This document shows, piece by piece, positions 4,679 through 56,260 of a stretch of DNA of 64,000 bases. The DNA comes from Trichosphaerium sp. ATCC 40318 (Eukaryota; Protista; Tubulinea): contig JALMLS010000448.1 of the NCBI GenBank assembly GCA_038496445.1, positions 248,001-312,000 of the forward strand. Reading direction: 5' to 3'. Numbering within the stretch: position 1 is the stretch's first letter; each line of letters begins with the position of its first letter. The notes below the pieces were generated by a model, which was not told the DNA's origin, made no database searches, and saw only the letters and a program-made list of their open reading frames with translations. A program made the position numbers and the translations under genes.

Positions 4679-4819
4679 CAAGAAAGACATTGATTGGACT
4701 GTACTTTCTGACGAAATTTTATAGTGAGAAATCATCTTAAAATCAAAATAAACTTGTCACATATAGGTTGAGTCGAAAAGTTGCTAGAGAAAAGTGATAG
4801 TGATGTATTTCGCTGTACA

Positions 4820-29253: not shown

Positions 29254-32200
29254 TGCCAACATGTTATTTATTTACAAAGTGTTTATTTAACATTCAGTAT
29301 GTTACTTCTATTGTATAACCCCTAATAACGGGTTTCTCTCTTCCCTGTTGTGACGAGGGCAAAAGCAATAAAATATCTTCTTGAAAAGAGGATAAAGTAG
29401 TGCTGCACACTTACCAGCAAGCATACCAATGTTGTACATTAGCGCAATTATAACTAAGAAAGAGAATACTAATTGAGCGTCTCCAATATTTTTTCTTTGA
29501 ATCTCTTGTTCATACGATGATCCTGACTTGACGATAATATCAAGTCTAAATAAAATACATTAATAAAAACCAAGAAAAAAAAAGGAAAACAACATCAATC
29601 AACAACCCATCAACTGTTTCCCCCTTTTGTTGTGTAACATTGGATGTAAGAAACAAGGGAAATGTTGAGACATATTTTGATAATTGCACTTGAGTGATGC
29701 CCAAGTAACAAGAAAATCAGGAAAAGGTGTCAAAGTTGTTGATGATGTTGGTTTGTAGATAGAACGTACCTAAAGTTGTATTCTTCCACATTTTGTAAAT
29801 CAAAACCATGTACTTCTGGAGCTTTAATATAACTATGTTTTATAATAGTATGCGCAAAGTATCCTACAACAAAGACAAAGTCACAAGTTTTGTTCAGATA
29901 ATTTACAAAAAAAAACCCACTCACCTGTAATGTCTTCATTAGTTATACGTATTATGGGAGTGGATTCTACCAACAATTCTATCTTTGCACTTGGTAGAAA
30001 TCTACCAACATCAGATATTGTCATAAGCTCCTGTGAACCTTGTAGAAAAGAAAACATTAGCACTGTCACAACCAAAACAATAATCAGCCTTAAATGTACC
30101 TTTTGTTGTAAAGTTTATCTTGATGGCAGCAAAATTGGGAGACCAACACTCTGTTGAAAGAAATGAAAAACTCATATTTGTACCATCTTTAAAGCTTTGA
30201 TCAGATTCTAGAAATTGTATAGCATATGTGTTTTCTGCATACATTTCAAAATCAACATTTTGACTGTTAGTATTAAAAGAATACCAACTGCGGTCTGACT
30301 TGTTACAATATGTAACATTCATACCGACCCACTCAATTGTGACCTCAGTGTATGAATTACTATTGGGTAAAAGTGTTATTGTTCAGAAACATGTTGAGAA
30401 GCTTACCTTTGGAGGTGTTTGTAAAAATCCAAAACATTATGAGGTGCTGATGCCAACAACTCACTTGATGTTTCTCGTAACACATTCAATGGCCTTATAG
30501 ACTCTGCTCCAATGATCATTGGTTCTCTTTCAAAGTCAAAGTAGATGTACAGCATGCACACAATACCAATAATACAAAAACCAATGGTACATATTGTAAT
30601 CAAACCTCCGATCAAGTTACCTTTTGTTTGATACTTACCATTAACAATCAGTGGTGTTTTATTCATATCCATAGACTTGAGCTTATCTAATAGCCATGTA
30701 TTACCATTTTTGGTACATACAAGTACGATCAACAGCAACAGCAAAATGAGAGAAAAATTTGCTATTGTCATCCAAGGAGCAGGTCCGTTCTTGTTAAAGA
30801 GTTGATCAAGGAATTGCTTTTGTACTGACTTTGGTGTCAACTCTGTAAAAGGGAACCTCAGTGACTGTGCTGATTCTGCTAAAGTTTCTTCATCAAAATT
30901 CATTATAGATCCAGGTGGACATGTTTTCTTTTTTTTTGGTGTACAAAGCGCACACGATGACATAGTTTCGTTTTTGTAATAACCTAGAAAAAAATAAGAA
31001 ACATAAATTGTTGATGTTCTCCTTTCAATAACACACGTGTTTCAGTTGAAGTATGATGTTTATAAAAGACACAACATTGTTTATGGTACTTGGAGAAGTA
31101 ATCTTACGTTATTCTTACCTTGTTTGCAGAAAGTGCAAGGCATGAGGTTTAGTCTAGTACTATCAACCTCTTTTCCTTGTCCGCAAGAAGCTATAAAAAC
31201 ATCATTTCCTGCATAATGTGGCCGTTGATTGAAACCAACACTAATTGTAAGACGGCAAGTTAAAATCAAAGTGTAGAAAATAACACGTGCTCTACTTTGG
31301 GCTTTGCTCCCTTCTCAATGCTTAATGATCCATTTACTGAACTTCCAATATATAAGCTTCCTTTTACTTGTACAACACGCTGTATAGGACGAGGACCAAG
31401 GGTATCACGAAATGGATAGTACGCATAATATTCAGATATTTTTTTAAGGCGGGCTTGTTTACTTGTCGGACTGCTAAGTGTCCAGCAGTACAAACAATAC
31501 TTGCTCTTTTAATAAAATTTGTTAGCACATATAGTAAGGTATTGAACATACGTAGTTAAGATCATACAGATAACAAGATAGGTGTAAATCGCAATAAGAA
31601 CCATAGTGTTCACTGGGTCGTGACCAAAGAGCAAACTCTGAATAATAAGCTTGACTAAAGCAACCAAGCGTTCTATCAAGACAAAAATAAAATGGAATGA
31701 CCCACAATACATCGTATGCACTTATTACTACAAGTGCATCGTTTTGTATTCTTTCTAACAATAATAATGAGATGTAAAACTGAGGAAGAACTTTACTTTA
31801 TACATGAAAAAAAAGTTGGTTTTCGAAACACCACACAACATTACGCTTCTAAATAACAAGTGTAGAATTTGATGAAGACTAAAATACTATGGAAAGGTTG
31901 ATTTTTATGGTGTAGTGACCCAAAAAAGGGTAAACGAAAAAAACATCAAATAAACCGTACTGGCATAGACTGTAAAGTCTTGTGGAATTGAGTATCCTTC
32001 AACCTCAATTTTATAAAAATATGACCTATTCCATCGACCATTCAATGTTTTAACCATTGATAAAATACCCAGTTCCTCGTCATTTTTAACACCAATCAAC
32101 TATGTCAGATTAATGAATCGATATTTTTTAAAGTACAAATGAAATAGAAGTTCTAACACACAACGTACCCATAGACGCTCAAGTTCATACTCATATCGTA

Positions 32201-32860
32201 TGTTTTTAATAACAAATCCTTCTTCTTCATATTCAATAAAATGCCATGAGTTAATAGTACCACCCGAAACATTAAAAGAAACAGCACGTGTGAATAAATT
32301 AATCACAACTGTATCGTTCCATGCTTCTACAATTGAATCAAAGTGGTATGATGTTCCATTCATAATACTACTCCATTTCACAGTTGACTTTTGCACAAGT
32401 TGTTTCACGTCATCCTCCCATTCCCAAATTTCTACAGATTCACGGAATGTAAAAAAGAAAGCGTCTTGCTGACACCCCAGTTAGCACGTATTCATCCCAA
32501 TTAATGGTTAAAGAAGCTTTGAAACGTACATTCACTCTAGCGACGCTTATTATGGGAGAATAGAAGCGTGTTGTGTTACAACCGAAATAACCATTGTAAA
32601 CGAATGTGGCTTTGTGCTTATTAGGTTTTGCGATAGTTTTGTATGCGTACCATTGTTATAAAGGGCTATTACGTTCTGGAATCGGTCTTGAATAAACTGT
32701 GATTCTTAAAAGGTATTAGTACGCTTAATATTAGACCATACGCCTCACCTAATGGAACCAATGTTGGTTTATCGTCTTTAAACATACATTGCGCTTCTAA
32801 GCCCTCAAAAATACTCACAGCGAGCAGAAAAACAATCAATGTACACTGTCGCTGCATGTA
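29254..32860 (-). repeat. Inverted segmental duplicate A, copy 1 (partner 50262-53982 on +)
   Basis: Long near-identical reverse-complement match including introns and 3' UTR, interrupted by divergent patches. Confidence 0.97.
29308..32857 (-). CDS. Gene A1: signal peptide, large ectodomain, Cys-rich repeat, 3 TM helices, cytosolic ExxxLL tail; unknown receptor-like protein
   Basis: MQRQCTLIVFLLAVSIFEGLEA signal; CGQG..CTFCKQG..CALC..CPPGS; TMs WMTIANFSLILLLLLIVLVC, LITICTIGFCIIGIVCMLYIYF and LVFSFLVIIALMYNIGMLA; ends EERNPLLGVIQ*. Confidence 0.8.
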
Positions 32861-33136
32861 CCTTTTACAATCAGACCGTGAGCTTAATTCGCTTAAACTG
32901 TTGCTGCTTAACTTAACAACGCCGGATTTTCCGGATTATTATCGATATGTTCGTACACCATGTGTAAGGCTATGTTGCCTCAAGAGTAATTCTATGTTAG
33001 CACACAGTTTTCATCTTACTTGTACTTCGTACTCATAATGTGAGATGTGTTGAACAGGTTTTTTACCTGAATGAACAACAAAAAGATAGCACGACTTTTA
33101 GCACCGAACGAAGAATGTGCACATGAATGTTGCTAT

Positions 33137-34150
33137 TTATTGACTATCACGCTTTGCACAGTTGCCACTGTTAGGATTGCAGTACAAGTTTGGCATTAGC
33201 CTTCCAGTCCATTTTGCTCTTAATCCAGCGATAGCATTATGGTTTGAGGATTGATCCCAAAAGCTAAATCCGAACTTTTCTCGATGAAAAAATGGACCAA
33301 CATGTCCTCCCCAGAATCCCTCAGCAATTAAAGTATTGCACAAAGAGCGAGACCACTTTAAAGACCAAGGAATGTTTGACTTTGAAGCACCAAAAGCACC
33401 TTCAGCGCCCTGTACAGTAGTACATGGAGGGTGACCAGGAGGCAAGTATGGTACTTGATCTGCAGGCGAAGGAATGAAAGTAGCACCACAGTGCGCGTTT
33501 CCAGATCCTTGGCAAGGACCGTATGCGCTTCCTGTAGTACCAGGGTATGCAGCGTCCCACATTGTAGTATGCTTACGTTGTTGGCCCCACAAGGCACGAG
33601 CGAACATACAATGATCTTTCTTCACTTGTCTATCAGCACTAGTGTATCCTAAACAACAATGTGAGCTTTTTGATTAAAACGCTACGTGATTAGAAAACGT
33701 ACCAACAAGTGCTCTTACATGGTTAATCGCAATACGATGCCATTCATCGACTTCTGCTTTGGTTGGGTTTGCATTGTCGGCAAAAGGTTGATGTTGGTAG
33801 AACACCTCGCGAATACCTCTAATACGATCGACACTTGGACAAATAGCTTTCCAGAACGCTCTTTTAGACATTGTAGAAGGGTCATACGTTGTTACACCGT
33901 CCCATTCTGAGTGACGCCATGCATTTTGTGAGATCCAACCGACGCCATCAGGGTCATGAGCGGTGTTTACTCCTGAAATCGCTTTTGCGTTCATTATCGA
34001 CCAATCTGCTTGGTCTGGGGTGTATTGTACAAGAAGTGTTGCTGCAGTAGACAGTACAAATATACATAGTAGTAACGTTGCTATCAAAGAGTTAGAATCC
34101 TCGCAGTTCATAATTCTATTTTCGTTTTCATAGGTACCGGAGGTTTTCAT
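33137..34150 (-). CDS. Gene B1: secreted Cys/Trp-rich protein, divergent CAP/SCP-like; no GPI signal (3 exons)
   Basis: Exon 1 MKTS, intron, ATLLLCIFVLSTAA signal; AINHVRALVG..AHCG..AEG..GGHVGPF..FGFSF; ends CAKRDSQ*. Confidence 0.8.
33169..34030 (-). repeat. Inverted duplicate B core, copy 1 (862 bp; partner 55283-56144 on +)
   Basis: Same-length, near-identical reverse-complement match with an identical internal intron. Confidence 0.97.
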
Positions 34151-34748
34151 TTCAGAAATAGGTGTTATCACGTGTTGTTGTTTTGAAGTGTTGTTTGTAT
34201 GATAATTGTATAAATGATATGTAGTCTGAAAAGTGTCGAGTTTTACCCGTGCACAATGTCACTGATCGCGCTATAAATAGTTGTAAATACTAAACTGTTA
34301 TTCCAATAAAATGAAGCGTGCTAGCTGTAGCTAGTGTGCCGCTATTTACATAAAAACAAAATTGGGTACTAAATATGATAAAGAATCCTGCAGTACCGAA
34401 ATAATCATCGCAATGGGTAGGTATGTTTTATTAATATGATTTATGAACAAGAAGTTTCGCAGTATGACATATTCTTTATGGATAGATTAGGAGATACTAT
34501 CACAACCAAAAACCACTTGGAAAACACGTGAACCAAACGTAAGAAGTACATCTCTTTTAGGACCACCTTCTAACGAATCTTGCGGGAAAAGATCGAAACA
34601 GTTTGTGTTTTTTTCGGACTGTTTGGGGTGTATAGTATCAGTTAGCAGCTTTGATTTTATCCATACTTGATAACCCGTTACCTTTTTAGGGGAGAATTGG
34701 GAAATGATATATTTCTGCTTGGTATCTGTTCGTGATATGCCCGCACCC

Positions 34749-34883
34749 AAACGAACGGGTCGTCACGCAAGATACAACGAAAGGGTCATTCACACAAGAT
34801 GAAACGAAAGGGTCGTTCACACAAGATGTAACGAAAGGGTCGTTCACACGAGATAAAACGAACGGGTCGTTCACACAAGAAAA
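34749..34883. repeat. 27-bp minisatellite, 5 copies (acgaaagggtcgttcacacaagatgta-like)
   Basis: Direct tandem units with a few substitutions and no spacers. Confidence 0.95.
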
Positions 34884-36543
34884 CTGCATTTTTACTGCAT
34901 TTTATAAGTTGTTAGAATAACACTCATTTCGCAGTATTTAGCATATTGACCTCTACATAATCCATGAGAGGCTTGTTGGCAACTTATTCGTTTTCGGTAT
35001 TTAGATCTGTTTTATTTTTGGTTTTCTTGTCATGTAAATAAACCTCCGTGCACTAATCTCACTGTATTTCAATAACCAGCACTGTCGCTATGATGTTCCC
35101 TAGGGCGTTATTGAGGAATGTAAAGCCAACATCCTTGAATAATAGCCATGTTATGGCTGTACACGTGTTTTACTCCGTTACAGACGTTTGGGTAAACGTC
35201 TGTTGGCTTCGTATAAATCAACAACAACATCAACCGACAAAGCTTAAACAACATGGCAAGCAGCAATCACCCACATCCCACCCAAACATTTCCGGTTCAA
35301 TTTGTTTTTATAAAACTGTAAAAACCTTTTTTTTATTTTCCAAGTGTTCTTGTATAATATAACAAATACTTGGCGCTGCGCTAGAGCCACAAGACATTTT
35401 TTATTCCTCCCAACGTCGTCCTAGTTAGTGTTCCTTGGGTAGTTGATAGAAGAAAGTCAACTGAGAGTGTTAGAACTCTAACATAATAGAAAATCAAGGT
35501 AATCGACTTCCGGCAAACAAGGTGTTGCTAGTTTTATCTGGGCTCATGGAAATTTGCCTAAAATCGTCAAGAGCACTCTCGAATATGCGGCGGTACCTGT
35601 TTCGTATTATAGTTCTGGAGTGTTTGAAAAGTCTTGGTCATCTAGCTGCCTTTTGAATTTGTGAAGTTTCCTTCCAAAGGCTGTTGCAACTTCTGTCGTC
35701 AACATCGCTCTATACAATAATGTCATAAACAATTACAGCAAGTCCATGACAGCTCTAAGCGGTTGAATAATGCACTAGATTGTAAATGGTTTATGGTGTA
35801 AGGATTCACCTGTGTACCAGCACGATCTGTTATCCATTGAATTTTGTCCTGCAACAATGTTGAAGGGCACACGAAAGATGAGAATACGTGTAAGAGAGAC
35901 GTGGCCTTAGTTGTAGGATAATAGCGTATTTATTAAAGGCATTATGTACATAATTCAGAGAAATACATATAATGTCATTATCGAATATCATTAATCTCAT
36001 GATTAAATGTAATCAGAATAGTAGCATATGCTGTTGCACGTTACATATCCAGTTTTCTGGCCTCAGTGGGTGTTGGAGTGTAAATGGTTATGTTTGAGGA
36101 CCATTTTTCATTGTCGTACATACCTTTATGCGTAGCAAAAAAACTGGGCCAAACAAGAAAAAGAAAGCTCTCTGAAAAAGGGTCAGAATTGAGCAACGTT
36201 CAGATATAAGATTGAATTGCGTAACGAATGTGAAATAGCATAGTTTCCAAATATGTAACAAGAATACTTAATACCTACTAACTACTGCCGTATACCTTAG
36301 CTACGGTTATAAGACGTTGTAAATAGTACAAGGTAAGGAGAAATCTAATTTATTAACTAACTTATATACATAGGTTTAAGTAACTTCGTTATCTGAATGA
36401 TAGCGAATGGCAAATACAACAAGGTCATATACGACAATACGAGAAATACAAAGCCTTGGTAAAATTTGCTCTGACGAGTTTAATCACAAAGACATATCAA
36501 CGAAAGATTAAGTTTATTTGTCTTACAAAATAGTAGTAAGAGC

Positions 36544-38128
36544 TTAAGCGAGGAAGCTCTCGAATACTTCGTTTTCACCACCTTCGAAGATACGAGTAAT
36601 TGGTACCCAAGCTGGTTTACCATTCTTGGCGAGGTACTCAGCAGCGTAGAACAAAGCCTTTTTCTTTTCACCAGTTGATGAATCTTTGCCAACCCAAGCG
36701 AAAACTTCTGGACCTGGAAGTAAAAGTTAATATAGTTACTCAAGTTTATGTTTGGTTACACCAAAAATAACGTACCAACATCGAAGATGAAGACATCCTT
36801 TGAGTCGAACATGTCACGCTTGATTGCGCCCTTTGCGACTTCAGTGAAAGTGAAGGATCCAGACTCGTCAGAGAGTTTGTTTAGAACACATGATACCTAA
36901 GGGTCAAGATAAGTAAATAACAAACCGCTAACATCAAAAAACTCGGCATGTGGCAGTTCACGTACACCAATCTCTTCGTCTTTTTCTACGGCATCCTTTG
37001 ACTTGATGTCTCCGGCAGCGCCTTCCAAAGCTTCGTAGAATTTGGCACAATCATCATCACCTTCTTCAATGACAACAGTAGTTGGTTTACCACCACGCTC
37101 ATCATCAATAGCACGTGTCAATTGAGCGGCTTTACCCTTTTCGGCAGCACCAGATTTTGAACCGTTCCATTGAGTGATAGTCAATCCTTGGTCAAGAATG
37201 AAAATATCACCTAAACATTTTATAATTAGTATCTTTTTTCAAGATCACGTGATTAAATTATTTTTGGTGTATCAAAAAAATGCGTACCTGAGTTCATGGA
37301 TGCAGTGGCGAGAGGTACTTCACGTACAACAACGTTGTTAACCTTACCCTTGATCCATAAGAGACGTGGTTTGTATTCCTACAGTCCATAGGTTAGTACA
37401 AGAAAAAAAACAAAAAAAATGGCGGTTGAGGAATCTAGAATCACATGCACATTTACCTTTTCTTCAACGTGGGTGAAACCGCTATCTACACCACCTTCGA
37501 GAATCTGTATTGGTGGATCGGCGAAATACCCTTGGAAGAGCTTGGATTCGTGATCCTAGCAAAAGTTTTAATTTTTGGGCGAGAAAGAAAAACTTTACAA
37601 ACCTGAACTTCACGATGTTGAACAGGAGCGCCGCCGAGCAAATCATCAAGTTCTACTGTCTATTCATTCTTTTAGCACGATAGAAGGTTAACAAAAGGTC
37701 GTACCTTGTAAGCAGCAGTACCGGCTTCGTCTTGCGTGGTGTACCTTTTCCGGAGGGTTAGTTTACAGTCTAGGCGAGGCGAGAGATGTTTTAGGCTCAA
37801 ACTTACTTTCCAAGCCAAAAGTGAACGTCGTAGCAGTCCTTGTTACCCTTTTTATAGGTTTTCAAGACAATGTATGAGTCTCCGCTGTAAAATTTACCAA
37901 TGTCGCATTTTGTGAGCTTGCGGACGTTGAACTTCTCAATTCTCCAGACTTGAAGAGGCTCTTTACCAGCACCTTGCCACTATAATAACTTTTAGGATAA
38001 AAGATACAACTTCAAGTCCGTACAGCGTCTTCGGATTCAGCGGCAGCTGTTTTGATCTTTTTTTCGATATCGCTACCGAATAGAGCGAGGTTTGTATCGG
38101 CTACGTTGTATTCCTTTTGCTTTAACAT
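36544..38128 (-). CDS. Three-domain gelsolin-family actin-severing protein (severin/fragmin-like)
   Basis: [94 protein letters not shown]. Confidence 0.95.
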
Positions 38129-38880
38129 GTTGGTGAGATGCTGAAAAATGACCGTAACGGCATCGCAAAATGTGTACTGATACACGTAACGCCGTTGGCG
38201 CTTTGTGACGCTATAATGGTGTTCTAGGATTGCACTTCGCAACGTGTTCGTTATCAGTTGCGCGTTGACACTTGAATGTGCACCATGTGCAGTTCTCAAG
38301 GTCTGGAAAAGGGCCTACGGACAAAAAAAGATCGCACAACGCAAAAAACAAAAAAATGGAAGAAACACACTGTTTTTTCCCGACAATGCGTGTTACCCTT
38401 GAAGCATCTCCTTGGAGAATAACTCTTTGACCGATTTATGTGTTTGGTGGTTTTTCCGTTATGAATTTTTTTAATATTACGCTACACGTGATAACTTCGC
38501 CCAAAAAGGCGTAATTTAGCGTCGTTTCATTTCTGTAGTCTTTTTTTAGTAAATGGTAACAAAAACTCTGCGTTTCACCTTTTTTCTAGCACTACTATCT
38601 GCTTACGCATTATTTATAGTAGAGAACACTAGAGTTCTCGTGATACAAGGCGCTAAAAAAAATATTGTGCCTTGTGTCACTATTGAAGCGCTTCTACAAC
38701 TTTAAGAATGTTGTTCTAGGCGTCGCTATGCCTGTTACAACACACTCCGGCAAGGAAAAAAACTTGTAACTCCTGTAGCATCAAGAACGTTTTTATGTAC
38801 ATTTTATTCTATTAGCATTCTTTTATACAAACCCTCTAATCTACCCATCCTCTAGAAAGCCATTTTTTTTCAAATATTCA

Positions 38881-41330
<2,450 letters not shown>

Positions 41331-41762
41331 GCCAGCACCAAAACTACTGAAAATTCACCTTTTGAATTGCGCTTGGAGTAAAATCCAAAATTGGCGTACT
41401 TAATTCAACTTAAGGCTTACTCGCCAAAAATGAAACGAGAAATGTCCTTTGATGATAAAATACTGTTTACTACTAGCCTTGCCAAGGACAACAGCGCACT
41501 GAACTTAATTATCAGTGAAGACCGTTACAAAAAAACATTTCACGTGTCCAGCACTTTATTGGTTACCATCACACTATGCCTGCTTTGATAAACTGTTATG
41601 CTGCCTATACACTGCAATCGCCATTTGATATATTATCAATGTGTATGGTGGTATATTCACATCAAGCAGCAAAGTGCAACAAAGCAAACAAAAAGTATGC
41701 TGTGCAAGTACCGTCTCAATGGGAATATGGAAGTCGCTGATTTCATCTGTTTAGTTCTAATT

Positions 41763-43095
41763 TTAGTCTGCCCAGTGTGGACCACGCTTGTGTGAAGATT
41801 TCTTTTTTCTTCGTCTGTTATTATTACGTTTATCATTCCGTCCCTTCTTGTTATTATTTTTACGTCCTTCGTCACCAGCTTGTTTCATGGATGCTTTACC
41901 AAACATTCTTATCTCATAAGCTACTAGTTGTTCCATGAATCCAATATTTGGTAAACAACGCTCGTTTCTCTCTGTCAAAAAAGCATAACAAAGATCAAGA
42001 GGTTGTTTGTATGAGTACATAAGGTATGCTAGTACTAGGGCTGATGACCTGCTGACACCTAAATATATACAATTCAATACTCTGAAATAAAATCATTGAA
42101 TGTAAATTGGGTGGGTAAAGATTGTGGTAAGACCTGACAAAAAACCAAAACGAACTCGGTTTTTAGTTGTCAGATTTTTTCCTTTTGCGTACCTCCTCTG
42201 CAATGTACAAGAGTAACACCTCCTTCTTTGCGTGCCCCATCTAGATAGTGTAAATTTATTAAAAATGTAGCGTCATAGCTTACCAATAAACCTGCAAGTC
42301 TCGTTAAAGTACTCACTTATTTTAACAAATTTTCTATCTTCTACTGGGAGATCCAAGTATGCTAATTGGTCTCTGAAATAACTTGGCTACAAGAGTTACT
42401 TAAATAAAGCCAATGTAATAGTAATAAACACATACAACAACTCCGTCTGTAGCATTGACAACATGCGTTACACCACATGACAACAAAAAAGATATTCTTT
42501 CAGCTGTTATATCTCTACCCTGAACTAGAAAAGGCGTGACTTCTTTGAGACCATACTTCCTTGTATTAAGGCTGTACTCTACACCACGATAAGTATCACA
42601 TGAAACAAGACATAAGCCTTACCTGTAGGGAAAGGAATAGGACCTGACGCCTCTTCTTCGTCATCATCAGTTGTGTCTGTAGTTTCTTCGTTGTTCAATT
42701 CCACATCATCTTCGTCTGTGTCTTCGTCTGTGTCTTGGTCTTCGTCTTCCTGCTGATCACGTGAGACTGTGAATCGAGAATTTCTAAGCGTACAACATTG
42801 AAACTAAGCCACAGTTTTATGTTATCTTTGCTTTCGGCTATGTCTTTTAGGTTTGCTTCTCTGGAATGATCTTTAGATATTTTGACGCGTGTTGAAGAAC
42901 GTACGTCACAATTTGTACTTTGTTTCCTAGTTTGTCTTCGAAGTGAATTACAATCGTTTCGTCTTCGTGTGGTAGAGCAATTACAGTTGAAATAGACGTT
43001 TTTAAGGCTTCTACCGATTCAGTAGATACATCTATGCTCTGGGAGGTGTCATTTACGTAGACTTCGCATGTGCGGGTTATAGAAGGCTTTTCCAT
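41763..43095 (-). CDS. Dual-specificity protein phosphatase with N-terminal PB1/ubiquitin-like segment and acidic linker
   Basis: THVVNAT, ISEYFNETCRFI, VTLVHCRG/GVSRSSALVLAYLM (HCxxGxxRS) and CLPNIGFMEQL. Confidence 0.9.
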
Positions 43096-43258
43096 GGTGT
43101 AATAAATGTTTAGCTGAAATTTAGTGAAGGATTACTCAAATCAAGATAGTACTACCTTCACCAGTTTTGGCTTGAGTTTCAGCTATATTCTGACAGCTAC
43201 AATGAAAATGAAATAAGTTGAGACTTAACCGTGAAAAAGTTTGTCGATTTGAAGCACT

Positions 43259-46200
43259 ATGTTTGATGCCGCACGGGCATCATTCGCTGGTACAAAGACC
43301 AAGGTGTTCAGGGAGATCCAGATCCCTGTTGGTGTCACTTCACCCAAACTCCAAGAATATTCACTCCCACAGCCACGAGATTATAATATTGAGCCAATTG
43401 CTACTGTAGCAGAAAAAGCGGGTGGATTTACGTTTGCTCAAGGCAATCGGTATATAATATGGTACTGACGCTATTGCGCGGCCAGAAGTAACAAAAAATA
43501 GGCGGGTAAGTGGACAAACGCTCCAGCTAGAAGAACTGTACGAAAATCATGATCTACACAACAGCGCTGTATCGTTGAGGTTCCCCGGTGCGTCAATACT
43601 AGGTTTTAGCACGCTTTCTGTTTATTTTTATTAGAGACGTTAGTTGGTTCAGTAGCTATATCAGAGGATCCCACAAGTGCGCACGAAGGTACAATTGTAA
43701 CAGTAGTAGCCTTCAGTGGCACAATATACCACTTTCGATTCTATCACCCCAAAGTACGCTAAAACATACACAACGCGACAACTCAACAAAATATAGTCTA
43801 TGGAAGAAAAACATTCGAGAGACGCAACACCTGACTCAATATTTGCGTATATACGTTCATCAGACTTTGCAGTACGTATTCTATGCTTTATTTAACAAAA
43901 TAAAACTCTTTTTTTCAAATTTTAGCGCGAGCTTTTCAAAAAAAAATCGAAAAAATTCAAAAACTCATTTATACTAACTCGTAATCTACTGTAGCAATCA
44001 CTGGTAAGGCGAGATGCATTAAATGGTGCTAGAGCAGTTAGTATTGCAAGCTATTCAATGTATTCTGTCGCTGTAAGCGCTAGTAATGGGTAAGATGTTT
44101 TTCTTTTGTTTTTTTTTCTTTTGTTTTTTTTTTTCAGTTGTTGGCTTTCTATTATTTATCTAATACTGCCCCTAAGGTCGGTGTTTATCATGAAGTTTCA
44201 AGTACGAGATAGTGAAAGCTTATCGTGCAATACAAAGGCTGAACTTAAGCAATCAATCCTCACATCATTGTTTCAACGCCGTTCGCCTATAAAAGATATG
44301 AAGATCCATGAGTGTACAACAATGCGTACTAAATTAATCGTAACACTGGATGAAAACCATAAACTTTGTATTTGGGATGCAGAAAGAAGAGTAAGTGAAG
44401 ACCAACATCATTCTTTGAAATGTCAAGTTCTGATTTTTTTATTTTTTTCTTAAAGGCTTGCATTACTTCAAAAGTCATTCAATGGGATTCATACGGTTCT
44501 GGTAAAGACTTACCAAAGGCACAAGGTATTAGATAATTTTTGGTGTAATTTATACTTATCACGTGCCATACACGTGAGAAAAAAGAGAATCAAATTTAGG
44601 TGTGGTAAATACTGACGCTGTTATTGTAGAAATCTTGGATAGCAGACTAGGCTTGTATTCGTTTGACAGCAACCTTTTCTGTTTGGTTGTTTATTTATGT
44701 CGTGAAGATTCTTCCCAATTTCAAATATACAGATGTGCTATTAATAATAACCAATTAAATGCACAAATTCATGCAGTATCATATTACGAACCAGACAGGC
44801 TTGTAGATTTTGCAGTAGATGATGGATTCTTATGGGCAATGTGGTGTGAAAAGTACGTACAAAATTGTGGAAGTTACATATCTCAAAAAACTAATATTTC
44901 TTGTCTCTGTAGGCACGCTGGAAATACTCTGTTCTATAACTTGAAGAGACTACATTTTGAATTATCTGATCCTATCCAAAAGATCGATTCTATGGATTGT
45001 GTTGCACACAAAGCTGTTTTAAACGTAAGTACCCTGTAATTTGATAGTATCTAGCTTTTTGTTGATGCTGACTCACGCCTGTTTAGAATTGGCATGGTGC
45101 TTCTTTATCAGAGCCTAGTGAAGTAGTAGAGCTTTTAGACGCATTATACGACGCTGAGCATCCTCCAGAAGATATGTTTTTAGAGGTAGAATATTAGCTG
45201 TTTATTAAGTATTAATTCCAACCATCAAGGCAATTTTTCATCCAAATCGCTTCTCTAAAGAATGCATATCTATCGCTTTATATGAATATAATGGTGTTAA
45301 TATGAGTGGTGCCACTTTATACATGCTACGCGAAGCTGCTGTACAAGCAGTAGCTAACAGAGTACGAAACAGCCGTCAGAAAAAATACAAAAACAGGCGA
45401 TGCTTTTGTTCGTTATTCGAACAGTTGCACTTCTTCTCCGATTTCTCTCTTACACTCAACTCTAATATATTTTTCTGTAGGTAGCAGTAGCAACAGAAAT
45501 GGGTGATTACGTTACAGGCTATGATGCATTCTTTAATCAATGGGCATCATTCTTACAATGCTGCTTAACTGCTTACCTTAAGGAATCACAACCTCTTGGT
45601 ATCTTTTGTTCGGGATCAGTTGGACCAGTTATTGTTAGACAAGGAGCTCTATCTTTTTTGAGAAACTGTAATACCTTGGAGGGATTTTATATTCAATTCT
45701 ATTGGAATAGCAATGGTGGGTTTAGTAGCGTTTCAACTGTTGAGAGATATATGCTTTCTCATGGATATGCTCATACTGAGCATATGGATTTACTTCAGCT
45801 CTTGACTTGCGCACGTGTGATTCATAGCCAGGTACCATATTTTGTGGTCAATGACGTTTGAAAGCTTGCTTACACATGTGTAGGTTGGTCATGTTGGTAT
45901 TGCTGCGTTTGAAGAAGATATGTTGTATCTTGGAGTAAGAGATGCAATAGTTAGGCCTGTAACACAACTTGTGTGTCCATCACAGTACGTCAATTAGTAT
46001 TTTTTATAGGGATGGCTTCTTACTTAAACTTGTTTTAGAGCAGACGCTGGTGATGAAAAAGGTGAACATGCTAGAGAACCTTTCTTGCCGCCTTTTATAC
46101 GTAAATTCAAGTCTATAAAAAGACCAATTGAAACTCTACGACTCATTCTTAATCTACTGGAGGACTTTGAACTCAACGGAGAGTATGCGTTTCTAACCAT

Positions 46201-49200
46201 CTTGGAAAAAGTAAATTCGCGTTAATATCTTCCTTTTGACACAAACGTGATAGTTTCCAACAGTGTTGTTAATAGCCTTGTTTTTTAGGGAACTGAAAAA
46301 CTTTGGTAATCATCCTTCAACTGCAAGCTTTTGTGATCATTGCATATCTCATGGTGTCCGTCAAATACTTCGGTCACGTTATGTGCTTAGTCTTAGTGTT
46401 GCACTTCTTATTTACCTATTGGCTCGTATTCGATTAGTGGTACCAAAAAAAAAGTTACTATAAGACATAAAGTCTAACTATTATGTTTTACAGAGTGGAC
46501 TTAGACTTAATGAATATAAAGTGGTTATGAATGAATTAGAACCAAAAGTATCAAAACTGTTGCGTACATTCTATGTTCTCAATTGGTTATCAAAGCAACG
46601 TATTGAAAATACAACAATAGAGTACGTTCCTTATTCTCTACTTTTTTCCAGGTTAAAGACATTTGTTAACCTTCATTTCAAGCTTTGATAATTTGGCTAC
46701 AATGACGAATAGACACTTAACAATGACTGGTACACGTACTAATGGTATTCAATCGTCTGCAAAGACTGATGGCATGGATTTCTTGCATCATTACTTCTTG
46801 AAGAGGAATAAAGCAGTAAGGCTTAAAATACCAGAGGATGAACAAAAACAATTTCGTTCATCCATGCAACTCATAGCACGAATGCAAGTAAAAGTATTAT
46901 TTGCTTATCACAACAGCAATACATCAGTTATTGAGCATTTCAGTGATAGCAAACAATTCACACTCATGCATGTACGTCATTTTTTTTAACAACTGTTAAA
47001 GCTTTAAAAAAAAAAACCCATACTCACAGAAGATTCTTTAGGATTTTATGTCATTGCTAGCAGACACAACTGGTTTTGGGTGGCATTATCTTGGTGAAAG
47101 TTATCTTCATTTACGGATGTATGCTAAAGCATTTGATTGCTTTGTTAAGGCGTCATGGGATGTTGGTGCGTTTTAAGAACTTATTTTTGTCAATAATTAT
47201 TTCAGCCAAATAGTAATGACTTCTCTGTAGAGAATGGACGTCCTGAGCTTTATCGTTTCCTACTCGATCGTGGTTATAAACCTAGAGCAACTAATATATC
47301 AATGGGAAAGGCTTTAAACGTACGATACCAGAGCATGAAAACAACGTCTTTGGATTCCTTTTTTTATTTCATATCTTTATTACAAACAACTATTATTCTT
47401 TAATCAATAGTATGTCATTATTGTCAATAACTTATCTATTGTTCTTAGATTATTTTGAATCACAAGGGGACAGATATTATTGATGAGACGTTACCAAAAC
47501 ATCGTGGTGTTCCATTGAGAAGAGCAAGATATACATACCTTAAACATTACTGGTATGAGGTCATTAATTTATTCGCAAGCGCAGAACAGTATTCTTTTGC
47601 TGTTCAAGCAGCTCATCGTGCGTTGATGGCCACAGACCCAAAAGACGAAGTTGCACTTGTACGCTATATATTTTTTCTTATTTTTTTCTTTCTTTTTCCT
47701 TGTACCACTTATCAAAAACTAACAAATACTGTTTTTTAGACGCAACTGTGGACTATCATATTTTTACGACAACTGGAACTTGGAGAATATGATGACGCAT
47801 ACATTGCAATTAATGCAAACAAAGCAATGTACGGGTTAATGATAACATTGAATGATGCACATCATTCAACTTAAGCACGAATCCAATTTTTTTGTTTGCC
47901 AAAAGTCAACGCAAATGTTTAACTTGAATGATACGCACAATAACCTACAAGTAGATGAGTGTAATTTCTTTTTATTAATTTTTATTGTATAGGTGTGCAG
48001 AAAGGCTTAGACGATTCCTAGTTGTGATGGCTGAGAAAGGAGAATGGAGAAAGATGATAAGGTACCCATTTTTGGGTATGGAAGATCAAGTACACAAAGA
48101 GCTATTGATGAGGTACAATAAGACACATAAAATTGATTTCCATCTCATTTTCCTCTTAGAAGCCGTAACAGCGATGTAAGCGAGCGACCTAATTTTTACC
48201 ATATTCTATACTCCTTTCATTCCGTAAGAGGAAACTACAGACAAGGTACAGTACAAATAATAATATTGAAAGACGATTGCGGGAACTACGCTGAAAACTT
48301 TCTTTTTGTACTTGCTTTTCTAAAGATGATTTAGCTGCTTCGGCTATGTATGAATATGCCGATAGGTGCTCTATTGAGACACATATGTTGGGAATAGAAT
48401 CCATGGAACGTCAGTCACAAGTACGTTAACTTTAAAATAGTTTTCTAGTTTGGAAAGCTACTCACTGGTTTATGTCTTTATTTCTCACATCCTCCTAGGG
48501 TCTTGTTTCTGCTATTAGCGCTTTATCACTTGCAAGAGATGATTTTGCATATGTACTGATGAGACCAAGAGATACACTTATAATGAAGCGACCTGTCTCG
48601 CCAAAGCGTAAATACTACGCTGGCAAAGAGTACATGGCCGAATTAGATGCAACAAAATGTACGAAAACAATTCCGCTCACTACTAGGGTTGTATCGCATA
48701 TGTGGTTTACTTATCCACCATTTCTTGTAGTTACTCCTGGCGTTGTTGTTATCACTATTGATGAGATACGGCGGAAGCAACTTATTGTTAGTTGTAGTAT
48801 AAAACTTGCAAAAAAAAATCTAAAGCAAGATGAAGACTCTCGTGCGTGTTCCCTTTATTTTTTCTTTCTTATCAAACTCTAATAAGTATCTTACGCTGTT
48901 ATGTAGCATCTATTCTGGGTAATGACAACCCATTGCATTTGTGTGATAAATTGCTTGAGCAAGGATTCATTGATGAAGCTTTTTCTATGGGCAAGTTGTT
49001 TAAGTTTAATCATGATGAAATGGCAAAGATATTCGTATATATGACGAATATTTGCTTGGAGCTTGATGGAGTTGATCTTGAGGCAATAGAATCTCCTTGG
49101 GCTCTTCGATTAGGTATGTATTTTAGCTATTTTTTGACTAAGCACGAGTCTCTTTCCCTTTGTTTTGGAGTTTCACTTTATTTCTTTTGTACTCTCGCTT

Positions 49201-49915
49201 CTGTGATTATTAACGGTTTTCGTTAGCTCGTATATACCAAAAACCTAGTGTGGTAGCTTGGATGAGGTTGAGAAAGTATTTAGAAGACTATAATTCTCAG
49301 TACACAAACTTTCAGTGCGTCCTTTATTTACAACTTTTTCTGAAGTTTTACTTGGAATTCTTTTGTTTTGTTCGTGTTCGTTTCATTTTATGGCTCTAAC
49401 TGATTTATAGCTACCACTTGGTAGCCGCAAAGAGGATACTTACAGCAGCTCCTGATACAAGATTAAAGCCATGGTTAATGAATGCGTTCAAACGTGAAGG
49501 TTCAGAAGATAAATCACATTTACTTATATCTCTTCTCATACAATTCGAGTCATACGAAGAAGCCTGTAGGCTTGGTATATATATGTTCCAAAATGCCAGA
49601 GAGGTACTTACAAATTTTGACATACACACATGCATACTAGCCAAGAATATTACGAAAAAGGGAAAAAAGACAGGCTCGAAGCCTTGTTTCTTCATTTTTT
49701 CTTCTTTTTTTTTTTATCTGATCCATTTATTTTCTTAGGCTCTAAGTGATTCTAAGACGACTTTCATATCTTATAATGTCGTTGATAATATGGAGAAACG
49801 TATCAATACATTCATGAGAAATAATACCTCTGATCAAGCAAGAAAGGATATACTAGAAAAAGATATTTGGCCTGATTACAAAGCCGCAAGAGATGCTTAC
49901 TTCAGGTCCTTGTAG
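43259..49915 (+). CDS. NUP160: Nucleoporin NUP160/Nup120 (about 30 exons)
   Basis: NRYIIWRVSGQTLQLEELYENHDLHNSAVSLRFPGASIL (Nup160 propeller start), VTLDENHKLCIWD, alpha-solenoid with LELGEYDDAYIAI, LRRFLVVMAE and AASAMYEYADR. Confidence 0.85.
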
Positions 49916-50261
49916 GGCATTCAAACAAGACTGTTGATTCAGGTGTATGATTATCCACTTGGGGTAGTTAGTAGTAACCCAACCAATAGTACAAAAAACA
50001 AAACGTTGAAAAAAACGAAGGAGCATTTAGAACCCACGTGCACCTCTTGCTGTAATTGATCTAGTGTAAGATAAAAAAATTTGATGAAAAAGTGCTGTCT
50101 TAAAAGCTTGAGGACGGGTTCATGTTGACTAGGTTTGGGCTTATAATACATAGCCATTGGACAATAGTCGAGGTTGTTCTTATCTGACTAATCCCGTATG
50201 GCTTGTTAAGTATTGACAGCTTAAGCGAATGCAAAAAAGCTGTTATCAATAATACGAACTC

Positions 50262-53200
50262 TACATGCAGCGGCAGTATACGTGGATTGTTTTTCTGCTC
50301 GCTGTGAGTATTTTTGAGGGCTTAAAGGCGCAATGTATGTTTAAAGACAATAAACCAACATTGGTTCCATTAGGTGAGGCGTGTGGTCTAATATTAAGCG
50401 TACTAATACCTTTTAAGAATCAAAGTTTATTCAAGACCGATTCCAGAACGTAATAGCCCTTTATAACAATGGTACGCATACAAAACTATCGTAAAACCTA
50501 ATAAGCACAAAGCCACATTCGTTTACAATGGTTATTTCGGTTGTAACACAACACGCTTCTATTCTCCCATAATAAGCGTCGCTAGAGTGAATGTACGTTT
50601 CAAAGCTCCTTTAACCATTAATTGGGATGAATACGTGCTAACTGGGGCGTCAGCAAGACGCTTTCTTTTTTACATTCCGTATCTGTTGAAATTTGGGAAT
50701 GGGAGGATGACGTAAAACAACTTGTGCAAAAGTCAACTGTGAAATGGAGTAGTATTATGAATGGAACATCATACCACTTTGATTCAATTGTAGAAGCATG
50801 GAACGATACAGTCGTGATTAATTTATTCACACGTGCTGTTTGTTTTAATGTTTCGGGTGGTACTATTAACTCATGGCATTTTATTGAATATGAAGAAGAA
50901 GGATTTGTTATTAAAAACATACGATATGAGTATGAACTTGAGCGTCTATGGGTACGTTGTGTGTTAGAACTTCTATTTCATTTGCACTTTAAAAAATATC
51001 GATTCATTAATCTGACTTAGTTGATTGGTGTTAAAAATGACGAGGAACTGGGTATTTTATCAATGTCTAAATCGTTGGATGGTCAATGGAATATATCGTG
51101 GTCCTACGAAATTGAGATAGTTGAAGGATACTCTATTCCACTAAACTTTACAGTCTATGCCAGTACGGTTTATATGATGCTTTTTTTTGTTTGTTTTTTT
51201 TTACTTTTTGGGTCTCTCACCCACACAACTCAAAGGTTTTCTCATGCTTTTGTTTATTTCCATCATTGATACCATGGTTGTTGTTGCGTTTATGAAAGCG
51301 TAGTGCTTTTGTAAGTGTGGTTTCAGAACCAACATGTTTACTCGATACTAAAAAAGCACAACTACTTTTTCAATATATCTATATTCTTTACGTCTCATAT
51401 TTATTTGTTTTAGAGAGAATGTATCGTAAATATGCACATCTAATTATAAATTCTTATGACGTAATTACCATAAAGCCATTTTATATTTGTCTTGATACAG
51501 CACTTGAATGCTTTAATCTAGATGAATATGCAAATTTTATTCTTTTTGACAGCCCGGATCAGTACATTGGATATTATTGTGACTTACACCTACCTTGTAG
51601 TATGTATCAAAATAGTGTACGTTCAACTAGTTTATTCAATCTTAAGGCTAACAAGTTTTTGATTAACAGAATGAGTATTGCTTGTATTGCTGGCTAAACA
51701 GTACAACAAACAACCAAATACAACTTGTTCAGATGGGTGTTTATTCACTAGGGAGAGCATTTTATCCTTCTCATGATACCCTTGGTCCTCGTCCTATACA
51801 GCGTGTTGTACAAGCAAACGGCAGTATATATATTGGAAGTTCAGTAGATGGATCGTTAAGCATTGAGAAAGGACCAAAACCCAAAGTAGAGCACGTGCTA
51901 TTTTCTAGTAACAGTGTTGATTAACTTACTGTTTTACAATTAGTGTTGGTTTCAATCAACAGTCGCATTATGCAGGAAATGATGTTTTTATAGCTTCTTG
52001 TGGACAAGGAAAAGAGGTTGATAGTACTAGACTAAACCTTATGCCTTGCACTTTCTGCAAACAAGGTAAGAAAAACGAAATTTACTCTGTGTTTTTTTGA
52101 AATCTGTTTTGTTTTGTCTCGTCAGACAGTTTTGCTTGATTACTTCCAAGTACCATAAACAATATTGTGTGTCTTTTATAAACATCATACTTCAGCTGAA
52201 ACACGTTGTGTTATTGAAAGGTTTCTTATTTTTTTCTAGGTTATTACAAAAACGAAACTATGTCATCGTGTGCGCTTTGTACACCAAAAAAAAAGAAAAC
52301 ATGTCCACCTGGATCTATAATGAATTTTGATGAAGAAACTTTAGCAGAATCAGCACAGTCACTGAGGTTCCCTTTTACAGAGTTGACACCAAAGTCAGTA
52401 CAAAAGCAATTCCTCGATCAACTCTTTAACAAGAACGGACCTGCTACTTGGATGACAATAGCAAATTTTTCTCTCATTTTGCTGTTGCTGTTGACTGTAC
52501 TTGTATGTACCAAAAATGGTAATACATGGCTATTAGATAAGCTCAAGTCTATGGATATGAATAAAACACCACTGATTGTTAAAGGTAAGTATCAAACAAA
52601 AGGTAACTTGATCGGAGGTTTGATTACAATATGTACCGTTGGTTTTTGTATTATTGGTATTGTGTGCATGCTGTACATCTACTTTGACTTTGAAAGAGAA
52701 CCAATGATCATTGGAGCAGAGTCTATAAGGCCATTGAATGTGTTACGAGAAACATCAAGTGAGTTGTTGGCATCAGCGCCTCATAATGTTTTAGATTTTT
52801 ACAAACACCTCCAAAGGTAAGCTTCTCAACATGTTTCTGAACAATAACTCTTTTACCAATAGTAATTCACAAACTGAGGTCACAATTGAGTGGGTCGGTA
52901 TGAATGTTACATATTGTAACAAGTCAGACCGTAGTTGGTATTCTTTTAATACTAACATGAAGAGTTTACACCACAACTTTGACACATACGCAGAAAACAC
53001 AAACGTTACACAAGGAATAATATCCTTTCAAAGCTTTAAAGATGGTACAAATATGAGTTTTTCATTTCTTTCAACAGAGTGTTGGTCTCCCAATTTTGTT
53101 GCCATCAAGATAAACTTTACAACAAAAGGTACATTTAAGGTTGATTACTGTTTTGGTTATGACAGTGCTAATGTTTTCTTTTCTACAAGGTTCACAGGAG

Positions 53201-53982
53201 CTTATGACAATATCTGATGTTGGTAGATTTTTACCAAGTGCAAAGATAGAATTGTTGGTAGAATCCACTCCCATAATACGTGTAACTAATGAAGACATCA
53301 TTACAGGTGCGTGGGGTTTTTTTTTGTAAATTATCTGAAAAAAACTTGTGACTTTGTCTTTGTTGTGTAGGATACTTTGCACATACTATTATAAAACATA
53401 GTTATATTGAAGATGGCCTGAGTGCTTCAGAGTTAGAACAAAATAATGAAGAATACAACTTTAGGTACGTTCTATCTACAAACCAACATCATCAACAACT
53501 TTGTCACCTTTTCCTGATTTTCTTGTTACTCGGGCATCACTCTCAAATGCAATTATCAAAATATGTCTCAATATTAACCTTGTTTCCTACACCCCATGTT
53601 ACACAACAAAAGCGGAAACAGTTTGATGGGTTGTTGATTGATGTTGTTTTCCTTTTTTTTTCTTGGTTTTTATTAATGTATTTTATTTAGACTTGATATT
53701 ATCGTCAAGTCAGGATCATCGTATGAACAAGAGATTCAAAGAAAAAATATTGGAGATGCTCAATTAGTATTCTCTTTCTTAGTTATAATTGCGCTAATGT
53801 ACAACATTGGTATGCTTGCTGGTAAGTGTGCAGCACTACTTTATCCTCTTTTCAAGATGATTTTTTATTGCTTTTGCCCTCGTCACAACAGGGAAGAGAG
53901 AAACCCATTATTAGGGGTTATACAATAGAAGTAACGTACTGAATGTTAAATAAACACTTTGTAAATAAATAACATGTTGGCA
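50262..53982 (+). repeat. Inverted segmental duplicate A, copy 2
   Basis: Reverse-complement match to 29254-32860. Confidence 0.97.
50265..53928 (+). CDS. Gene A2: paralog of A1, receptor-like 3-TM protein
   Basis: Same exon structure as A1; ATG 50265, TAG 53926-53928. Confidence 0.8.
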
Positions 53983-55157
53983 GCTGTTTAAAATACACTC
54001 TGATGCGACTCAACATTTTGATTTTGCTTCAACGTTAAACTTGTATACTTGTTCTTTCAAATACCATAAAAATATGAGCCAACATATCAGGTGCTCAATC
54101 TTATTTACTTGTTTTGTCGCGTTCAATGCGAAATCTAGCCAGTTGCGCATACTTGATAATAATCTAAGGATTACGAAAAGCACGTGAAAGTTGAAGTGAA
54201 AGTTAAAAATCCTTTGCTCGAGTAACATCACTGTCTTCCATCGAAAAACTGCCAAACGCATTACTTTAATTGATGATAAATATGAATTATACCCATTGAT
54301 GTATGTAAAGGATTGTACGCCTACTTCTCAATTGTTAGGTATTTCAAATACTCATTAAACGGGTCTTTATTCCGGTACTGCGCTAGCGACAGTACAAAAT
54401 CCGCTAGGTAGATTATTAAGGAGACTTTTTATTGTAGAGAATCTTATCCAATAAAAAGAGCGTCAGCAGTATCTTTTGAATCACGTGAGTTTTTATTTGA
54501 CAAGTCTTTTCGTATTTGTCACTCTTATTATGTACTTCTCTATTATAATTTTTAGCAATGTAGAAGCGTTCGCACTGTGCGATGTATTCTAAAGTCAAGA
54601 ACTTTACATTAACTTTTGGGCTTTGCCTTCGGGTTTTTAGCGATTATTGGGTGACTGCTGGGGGAAACCCAAAACTATTGGTCTGCTCAAAACCATTTAT
54701 AAGACAACTGTATGAGTAGACAAAGCGTTTGACCACTAGGGAGATTTTGTGTGTGGAGTTATTCACATTCGTACGTTTCACCTACAATCTTGTGTGTACT
54801 ATTTTGCGCTGAGTGGCTGTCGAATGCGTAGGCCTATTTTCCCTGTAATTGATTGTATAATAAGAGATGTTTTGATGAAACGTTTCTACCGTTTCTGATG
54901 TTCCTAATGTTTTTCTTGTTAGTAAATGAGTTTAAAGCTTCCACTGGGCGCTCTCTCGAGCATGGCAACCTTTGATTACAGCGCCTTTTTCTTCAAAAAT
55001 ACGTACGGATGTGAATAACTCCACAAATACCGCAGGCTTGTTTTATGTAACTAGCGCACTAAAAGTAAAAATCCAAACATTTTCAGAAAACTCACAAAAA
55101 ACACCATTTTTAAAACACAGAACTGACAAAACATCACGTGATAAACCATTACCCAAA

Positions 55158-56260
55158 ATGAGTATTTCAGGTCAGACATAAAGATATTTTATCTCGACAA
55201 AACTAACACCCTTTCGCTAGTGCTGCTAGTTTTTTGCCTCTATGTGTCGTCTGCTATGGCTGCAGAAAATACCCTAGGGCTCGTACAATACACCCCAAAC
55301 CAAGCAGATTGGTCCATAATGAACGCAAAAGCGATTTCAGGAGTAAACACCGCTCATGACCCTGATGGCGTCGGTTGGATCTCACAAAGCGCATGGAGTA
55401 GCTCAGAATGGGACGGTGTAACAACGTATGACCCTTCTACAATGTCTAGAAGAGCGTTCTGGAAAGCTATTTGTCCAAGTGTCGATCGTATTAGAGGTAT
55501 TCGCGAGGTGTTCTACCAACATCAACCCTTTGCCGACAATGCAAACCCAACCAAAGCAGAAGTCGATGAATGGCATCGTATTGCGATTAACCATGTAAGA
55601 GCACTTGTTGGTACGTTTTCTAATCACGTAGCGTTTTAATCAAAAAGCTCACATTGTTGTTTAGGATACACTAGTGCTGATAGACAAGTGAAGAAGGATC
55701 ATTGTATGTTCGCTCGTGCCTTGTGGGGCCAACAACGCAGGAAAACTACAATGTGGGACGCTGCATACCCTGGTACTACAGGAAGCGCATACGGTCCTTG
55801 TCAAGGATCTGGAAACGCGCACTGTGGCGCTACTTTCATTCCTTCGCCTGCAGATCAAGTACCATACTTGCCTCCTGGTCACCCTCCATGTACTACTGTA
55901 CAGGGCGCTGAAGGTGTTTTTGGTGCTTCGAAGTCAAACATTCCTTGGTCTATAAAGTGGTCTCGCTCTTTGTGCAATACTTTAATTGCTGAGGGATTCT
56001 GGGGAGGACATGTTGGTCCATTTTTTCATCGAGAAAAGTTCGGATTTAGCTTTTGGGATCAATCCTCAAACCATAATGCTATCGCTGGATTAAGAGCAAA
56101 ATGGACTGGAAGGCTAATGCCAAACTTGTACTGCAATCCTAACAATAATGGGTGTACAGGCGCCCGAGACGCCAACCAACAAAGTGCCAGCAATCGCCTT
56201 GTTTTCACTTTTTCTTATGTAGTTCTTTTCTTTGTAGCACTCGTATTAGCACACGCTTGA
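55158..56260 (+). CDS. Gene B2: paralog of B1 with C-terminal GPI-type signal (3 exons)
   Basis: Exon 1 MSIS, intron, VLLVFCLYVSSAMA signal; core near-identical to B1; tail DANQQSASNRLVFTFSYVVLFFVALVLAHA*. Confidence 0.82.
55283..56144 (+). repeat. Inverted duplicate B core, copy 2 (862 bp)
   Basis: Reverse-complement match to 33169-34030. Confidence 0.97.

Follow-up and report, generated by a model that had tools for sequence, protein, structure and literature searches.

Two gene pairs in inverted, interleaved order around a unique core

We analysed a stretch of 64,000 nucleotides (nt) from the protist Trichosphaerium sp. ATCC 40318 (Tubulinea), taken from contig JALMLS010000448.1 of GenBank assembly GCA_038496445.1 (positions 248,001 to 312,000 of the forward strand; hereafter the window). 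At positions 29254-56260 of the window two genes, named here A and B, are each present twice, the two copies of each lying in opposite orientation on the two sides of a unique core. Self-BLAST of the whole window and a repeat search of 25-60 kb provided the repeat map: the search returned no direct repeat and ten inverted pairs, which merge into one pair of A arms and one pair of B arms, in agreement with self-BLAST. The locus is made up of the following features.

29254-32860, minus strand: left A repeat arm, from 3 nt upstream of the ATG to ~54 nt past the stop codon
29308-32857, minus strand: gene A1, 13 exons, uninterrupted open reading frame (ORF) of 836 amino acids (aa)
33137-34150, minus strand: gene B1, three exons, introns of 57 and 54 nt, 300 aa, signal peptide
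33169-34033, minus strand: left B repeat arm, mature-protein core and intron 2
34151-50261, no strand: unique core, ~16 kb, with four housekeeping genes (Pfam matches on exon ORFs and ORF list)
50262-53982, plus strand: right A repeat arm (repeat search, self-BLAST and alignment)
50265-53928, plus strand: gene A2, same 13-exon structure as A1
55158-56260, plus strand: gene B2, three exons, 332 aa, hydrophobic C-terminal tail
55280-56144, plus strand: right B repeat arm (repeat search and self-BLAST)

The outer part of the A arms (29254-31103 versus 53982-52138) is 93.4% identical and the inner part (31104-32860 versus 52080-50262) 83.5%, with sub-blocks at 95-99%, while the B arms (33169-34033 versus 56144-55280, 865 nt) are 97.7% identical. 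The paired coordinates sum to ~83,200 for A and to 89,313 for B, a difference of ~6.1 kb, and since these sums are unequal the order on the plus strand is A1 B1 core A2 B2, interleaved and with every copy inverted. A single mirror duplication leads to B A core A B and cannot produce the order observed here. An earlier first-pass annotation, made from the sequence alone, had proposed this layout and argued that one inverted duplication could not yield it; the repeat map upholds the layout, and the differing A and B sums the argument. A and B are 0.3-1.2 kb apart in either copy, and neither blastn nor tblastn found a third copy or relic of A or B in the window.

Identity between the copies is a mosaic

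Gene A was modelled from four RNA-supported joints and the A1/A2 alignment, which gave the 13 exons; RNA evidence here and below comes from transcript contigs of two public runs (X1 and X2, 13 Mb each), the only runs in which a search found any part of a 6-kb query from the locus, neither of them of DNA. Between A1 and A2, exons 1-4 are 94-100% identical and introns 1-4 97-98%, followed by a divergent block of ~870 nt:

51030-51900, plus strand (A1 ~31256-32086): divergent A block, exons 5-7 and introns 5-7, 65-79%, with all exon indels in frame

In this block exons 5, 6 and 7 are at 87%, 65% and 79% and introns 5-7 at 65-73%. Exons 8-13 return mostly to 96-99%, with small introns at 93-98% (introns 9, 10 and 11 at 95-98%); short divergent patches interrupt exons 10 and 12. 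Introns 5 and 8 differ in length between the copies. Identity is thus regional and not exon- or intron-specific, and outside the A arms it falls at once to 46-56%, the random level.

The B pair behaves similarly. Its core has a synonymous difference (pS) of 0.058 and a non-synonymous difference (pN) of 0.026 (pN/pS ~0.45), and intron 2 is identical at 54 of 54 positions. The signal exon has pS 0.72 and pN 0.42, with an intron 1 of 50 versus 57 nt, and the tail pS ~1 and pN 0.46, over ~7 aligned codons only. Values of pS are therefore 0.04-0.06 in homogenised blocks versus 0.7-1.0 at the B ends. The 5' ends of B1 and B2 are nonetheless homologous, if old, since both keep the 13-nt first exon and its phase-1 intron.

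Within the homogenised blocks small introns are as alike as exons (97%), whereas the flanks are saturated, which points to old duplicates whose A and B copies have probably been homogenised by repeated non-allelic gene conversion. A and B lack collinearity between the two copies, and A by itself comprises at least five blocks, so that several independent conversion events are implied. The first-pass annotation had read continuing exchange from near-identical internal tracts, introns included, set between old promoters and B ends, and the pS contrast and the regional course of identity bear this out. Conversion would re-homogenise those parts similar enough to pair, namely coding blocks and small introns, while flanks, large introns and a few already diverged patches would escape it, leaving the mosaic.

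In the divergent A block pN/pS is 0.35-0.9, and it reaches 1.16 in one 40-codon window, the exon 12 patch; homogenised A windows give 0-0.8 from a handful of substitutions each. Relaxed constraint or mild diversifying selection would account for this pattern; windows as small as these do not demonstrate positive selection in the variable patches. Since the indels in the divergent exons are all in frame, both A copies appear to have been coding for most of their history.

Gene A encodes a predicted multi-pass membrane glycoprotein

A would be lineage-restricted and, to judge from its hydrophobic stretches, a multi-pass membrane glycoprotein. The A1 product reads, in order, as a signal peptide, an ectodomain of ~480 aa, a first transmembrane segment (TM1), 33 residues, TM2, a loop of ~330 aa rich in N-glycosylation sites, TM3 and a short tail. 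The C-terminal end of the ectodomain is a Cys-rich module with a sub-threshold match to Ephrin_rec_like/TNFR_c6 (E-value 0.007); Pfam searches with the A exon ORFs gave nothing significant.

Exon lengths of A1 and A2 differ by multiples of three everywhere except in exon 4, owing to a small deletion that the first-pass annotation had overlooked:

50680-50681, plus strand: site in A2 exon 4 at which 2 nt of A1 are missing (alignment, and translation with RNA-supported splice sites)

The deletion, after 50680, causes a frameshift and an immediate TGA, so that A2, as assembled, has either recently become a pseudogene or been assembled with an error; speculatively, an in-frame acceptor ~50 nt downstream could rescue the frame. 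A2 is transcribed, as its type of 5' end is present in run X2 RNA contigs with no differences. The A1-type 5' end is also found in the RNA assemblies, and the A contigs of run X2 are nearly identical to the window.

Donor sites in A and B are dominated by GTACGT, GTACGG and GTACAT. The donor of A2 intron 7, at 51897 (exon 7), was modelled as GC where A1 has GT, and a further departure is seen in intron 2:

50466-50506 (A2, plus strand; A1, 32616-32656): A intron 2, 41 nt, RNA joint 50465/50507

An RNA contig shows this intron spliced out and the frame maintained, the joint being AC..GC with four ambiguous letters, and none of the five registers that the 4-nt ambiguity allows has GT..AG or AT..AC ends. 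Either the intron is non-canonical or the contig stems from a third copy that escaped detection.

A is a near-orphan: run exhaustively with HMMER against 1.84 billion representative proteins, its 200-aa exon 9 ORF retrieved two weak matches. One of these lies on an 8.2-kb metagenome contig (L004; ENA ERZ25072490, GC content 44%), where exon-like ORFs at 3103-4750 encode the C-terminal half of an A-like protein, collinear with A at ~30% identity (30-40% when set against A1 residues 376-800). As judged from these ORFs, the predicted C-terminal TM-loop-TM module of A occurs in at least one other, uncultured eukaryote. L004 is the sole other A-like locus found, and it carries no B-like sequence within ~3 kb; a metagenome scan with the exon 9 alignment yielded no further relative. 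ESM Atlas searches placed exon 9 with unnamed plant clusters (0.85) and exon 4 with mixed beta-propeller-like clusters, both weak leads that we did not use.

Gene B belongs to a bacterial family of secreted proteins

B1 and B2 share one plan, with a 13-nt exon 1, a phase-1 intron (57 or 50 nt), a main exon, a 54-nt intron and a last exon. B1, with a signal peptide and no C-terminal anchor, looks like a secreted form, and the tail of B2, in which ~20 hydrophobic residues follow small residues, would be a glycosylphosphatidylinositol (GPI)-type signal. The 54-nt GT..AG intron is spliced out in RNA contigs of both runs, and run X1 includes a spliced B1-type contig with the B1-specific tail. In run X2, a spliced B contig (window 55283-56143) matches neither B1 nor B2 at 23 of the 40 positions listed and carries a mixture of B1-type and B2-type letters at the others; it represents either a third B paralogue elsewhere in the genome or a diverged strain.

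Searches with the B last exon gave 187 protein matches, and all 12 of the named ones are bacterial, at 66-78% identity (Myxococcales, Cyclobacteriaceae, Marivirga, Ekhidna, Mariprofundus, Campylobacterales, Marinospirillum and Leptospira). A quick maximum-likelihood tree, whose root and deeper branching are not fixed, unites B1 and B2 in one clade (Shimodaira-Hasegawa-like approximate likelihood ratio test, SH-aLRT, 100), which sits on a long branch amid bacterial sequences. In the three bacterial contexts inspected (Marivirga, Leptospira and a metagenome contig) the homologues are solitary, with differing neighbours and no A-like one among them. The simplest reading is one horizontal acquisition from bacteria, followed by domestication and duplication; that B is integrated in the host genome is shown by the intron spliced in RNA and by its eukaryotic neighbours (gelsolin, Nup160 and MORN genes). 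After transfer B would have gained its introns and signal-peptide exon, and one copy a GPI-type tail.

The bacterial family consists of secreted proteins of ~300 aa, 58-78% identical across phyla (Bacteroidota, Pseudomonadota, Myxococcota, Campylobacterota and Spirochaetota), with ~60 invariant residues, several Cys, His and Trp among them; neither Pfam nor NCBIfam has a model of it. Many members may be lipoproteins, to judge from a consensus Cys near position 21, and the placement of Leptospira members in separate tree clades makes the family look mobile among bacteria.

No Pfam or NCBIfam model matched the B exons, nor did any Pfam model, PF00188 included, match four bacterial homologues. 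An AlphaFold model of a bacterial homologue (predicted local distance difference test score 85.7, predicted template modelling score 0.81) had as its best structural matches almost exclusively CAP/SCP domains, with Z-scores of 5.4-7.1 over 118-165 residues, in a range (under 8) where, as the tool warns, a match possibly reflects just a common arrangement, and with Foldseek E-values above 0.6. A CAP-like fold for B is thus a weak, model-based lead and not membership. Like B, proteins of the CAP/SCP/PR-1 superfamily (PF00188; the PrgA CAP domain, Na-ASP-2, CRISPs and Pry1) are secreted, and they have an alpha-beta-alpha layout; B, in contrast, lacks a PF00188 match and, at ~300 aa, has an extra N-terminal part. 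We dropped an iota-carbonic anhydrase (7c5x), which gave a weak PDB sequence match to a bacterial B homologue (P0004 residues 154-256, E-value 0.0017) that fold searches did not back, and we did not use an ESM Atlas hit of exon 3 to glycosyl hydrolases (0.79), another weak lead.

The core and the surrounding genes

Host DNA in the window is intron-rich, with ~37% GC, and contains no runs of N. Pfam identified the four core genes listed here, in keeping with the severin, kinase, DUSP and NUP160 genes of the first-pass annotation.

~36900-38314, minus strand: gelsolin/severin-type gene (gelsolin repeat)
~39815-40703, minus strand: protein kinase (Pkinase)
~41766-42618, minus strand: DSPc phosphatase
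~43253-49735, plus strand: Nup160 (Nup120/160 propeller)

Only ~500 bp separate the 3' end of Nup160 from A2, and a MORN-repeat gene lies to the right of B2 (Pfam scan of exon ORFs). Low-complexity tandem repeats at 22200-25100 (self-BLAST 22305-22678 and 24262-25122) code for PAEEPK-rich and TTTxVDFKAGLKKT-type repeat proteins, and a short tandem repeat coding VNDPFV units occupies 34686-34920 on the minus strand, just past the B1 promoter region.

Origin of the interleaved order

We interpret the locus as two old inverted paralogue pairs, of genes unrelated to each other, that evolve in concert by gene conversion and whose order is a historical by-product, a reading that we consider probable. 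The most economical history would comprise two tandem duplications, one of A and one of B on the opposite side of the core, and then one inversion of ~20 kb, its ends falling between the A copies on one side and the B copies on the other. When simulated, an ancestor -A1 -A2 -C +B1 +B2 (C being the core) in which A2..B1 is inverted becomes exactly -A1 -B1 +C +A2 +B2. Two tandem duplications and one inversion reproduce the order, so that the circular DNA intermediate suggested by the first-pass annotation to explain the permutation is unnecessary. In the history that we infer, the adjacency of A and B would be secondary and not that of a cassette.

Several points weigh against this interpretation. 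The tandem-plus-inversion history is not distinguishable here from other multi-step or template-switching ones; a functional link between A and B is possible; and the arrangement and its single orientation rest on one assembly. Moreover, three sharply bounded variable patches (in exons 5, 10 and 12) stand amid homogenised exons, with introns at 95-98% beside them, and these could owe their divergence to selection for diversity instead of having simply escaped conversion.

The same conversion dynamics might have acted on an order of different origin, in which a single complex replication-based event (template switching) copied A and then B, in inverted form, across the core, or an inverted duplication of a true A-B cassette was followed by transposition or by loss from a B-A-B array. 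Template-switching events give inverted, reordered duplications; an origin of this kind requires no earlier tandem pairs and would account for both copies of both genes lying within so short a distance of each other. Against it, tandem duplication and inversion happen more often than such events, and tblastn detected no relic of a third A or B in the window, although a B lost from the short gap between Nup160 and A2 would leave no trace; the flanks are saturated, so that any junction microhomology is gone. We regard this family of origins as possible but unlikely.

A receptor-ligand cassette or a switch is improbable

The first-pass annotation had seen in the locus a cassette of a receptor, A, linked to a ligand or effector, B, under diversifying selection, with the repeats serving as a flip-flop or shufflon-like switch that would create chimeric A variants and swap the promoter and anchor of B. 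Several observations are in its favour. A adjoins B in both copies, the products of both carry signal peptides, B comes as a putatively secreted and a putatively anchored form, the bounded variable patches of A fall in predicted extracellular parts (pN/pS up to 1.16), and the inverted arms, 0.87 and 3.6 kb long with 93-99% identity, have the length that homologous recombination needs. We nevertheless consider the proposal improbable, in the first place because B does not look like a diversifying ligand: its core shows strong conservation, with 70-78% identity to bacterial proteins and the low B1/B2 pN and pS given above (0.026 and 0.058), and its bacterial homologues work without an A-like neighbour. 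On the side of A, A2 is frameshifted as assembled and the sole other A-like locus, on L004, lacks B within the ~3 kb covered. The two A-B adjacencies share one origin or came about through inversion, and hence are not independent. These points leave the linked pair without support.

The switch fares no better. Its structural premise, that a crossover within the inverted arms would flip the interval, is sound, and crossovers that go with conversion could flip it incidentally, as at other inverted-repeat loci, without any selected switch. No recombinase is among the four core genes, nor is any such ORF present in the ORF lists of the region, of which selected ORFs were scanned with Pfam. In simulation, crossovers reach three isomers only, the present order and the predicted -A1 -C +B1 +A2 +B2 and -A1 -B1 -A2 -C +B2, since the pairs interleave. 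On purely logical grounds, reversibility without loss of parts does not hold, because inversion through either pair turns the other into direct repeats, around A2 or around B1; such repeats are prone to deletion of A2 or B1, which argues against a selected, reversible switch.

Were recombination frequent, a clonal population would contain the three isomers, one with a chimeric A and another with the B promoter and signal exon swapped between the secreted and the GPI-type tail. The locus would then vary the cell surface stochastically by means of ordinary homologous recombination, and selection would keep its A patches diverse; we think it very improbable that this is so.

Least credible of all is an assembly artefact, in which the copies would be alleles or collapsed repeats wrongly joined in cis. 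In its favour, the layout derives from a single assembly, and faulty assembly might account for the 2 nt missing from A2. Against it, similarity ends abruptly, giving way to non-homologous flanks and differing outer neighbour genes, where alleles would remain alike. The copies also have different tails and signal exons, different lengths of introns 5 and 8 and an 870-nt block at 65-79%; A1-type and A2-type 5' ends and a B1-tailed transcript are present in independent RNA assemblies, and there are no N gaps. On sequence grounds, the copies are not mis-joined alleles.

Significance and comparison with known systems

The locus would be a clean example of old inverted paralogues that stay partly identical through gene conversion, and it illustrates that a seemingly 'impossible' permuted layout can arise from ordinary events. 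It also carries a caution, in that repeated adjacency within one duplicated locus is not evidence of a functional cassette. B adds an uncharacterised, unusually conserved bacterial secreted family, apparently acquired by a protist and split into a secreted and a putatively anchored form, and the interleaved inverted-repeat architecture predicts specific inversion and deletion isomers. Overall, we judge it likely that the locus represents a known kind of genome dynamics and not a new receptor-ligand or switching system.

The Tgr proteins of Dictyostelium (tgrB1/tgrC1) are, according to two reports, both polymorphic transmembrane proteins (PMC4404348, PMC11088635). Their likeness to A and B is that of two adjacent surface-protein genes, an analogy of logic only. 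Unlike in the tgrB1/tgrC1 pair, B is small, highly conserved and of bacterial type, with no TM segment beyond its signal peptide and GPI-like tail, and the genes here lie in tandem.

In mammals, as in the X-linked FLNA-EMD interval and in human polymorphic inversions mediated by inverted repeats, inverted paralogous arms undergo concerted evolution, and non-allelic homologous recombination flips the genes between them without disrupting them. Such inverted segmental duplications are simple pairs, larger and more uniform, and unlike the locus described here they contain no interleaved second pair that an inversion would turn into direct repeats.

The closest known case, the Saccharomyces chromosome XIV flip/flop region, is a 24-kb block between 4-kb inverted repeats with two gene pairs (Salzberg et al., 2022; PMC9731477), in which homogenisation of the repeats is ongoing and inversions of the block recur as a side product of the way crossovers are resolved (PMC9731477). 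As in yeast, inverted repeats flank a unique block of ordinary genes in Trichosphaerium, the arms are homogenised in their non-coding parts as well, and the repeat genes include at least one that evolves fast and is confined to its lineage. The yeast arms, however, form one mirror-image composite repeat of almost uniform identity, whereas here the pairs are interleaved and the identity is a mosaic of 65-100%; and both orientations are documented in yeast, whereas this locus is known from one assembled orientation, with one A copy frameshifted. The interleaved layout of the locus is unusual, and one of its partners is a gene of bacterial type, apparently domesticated.

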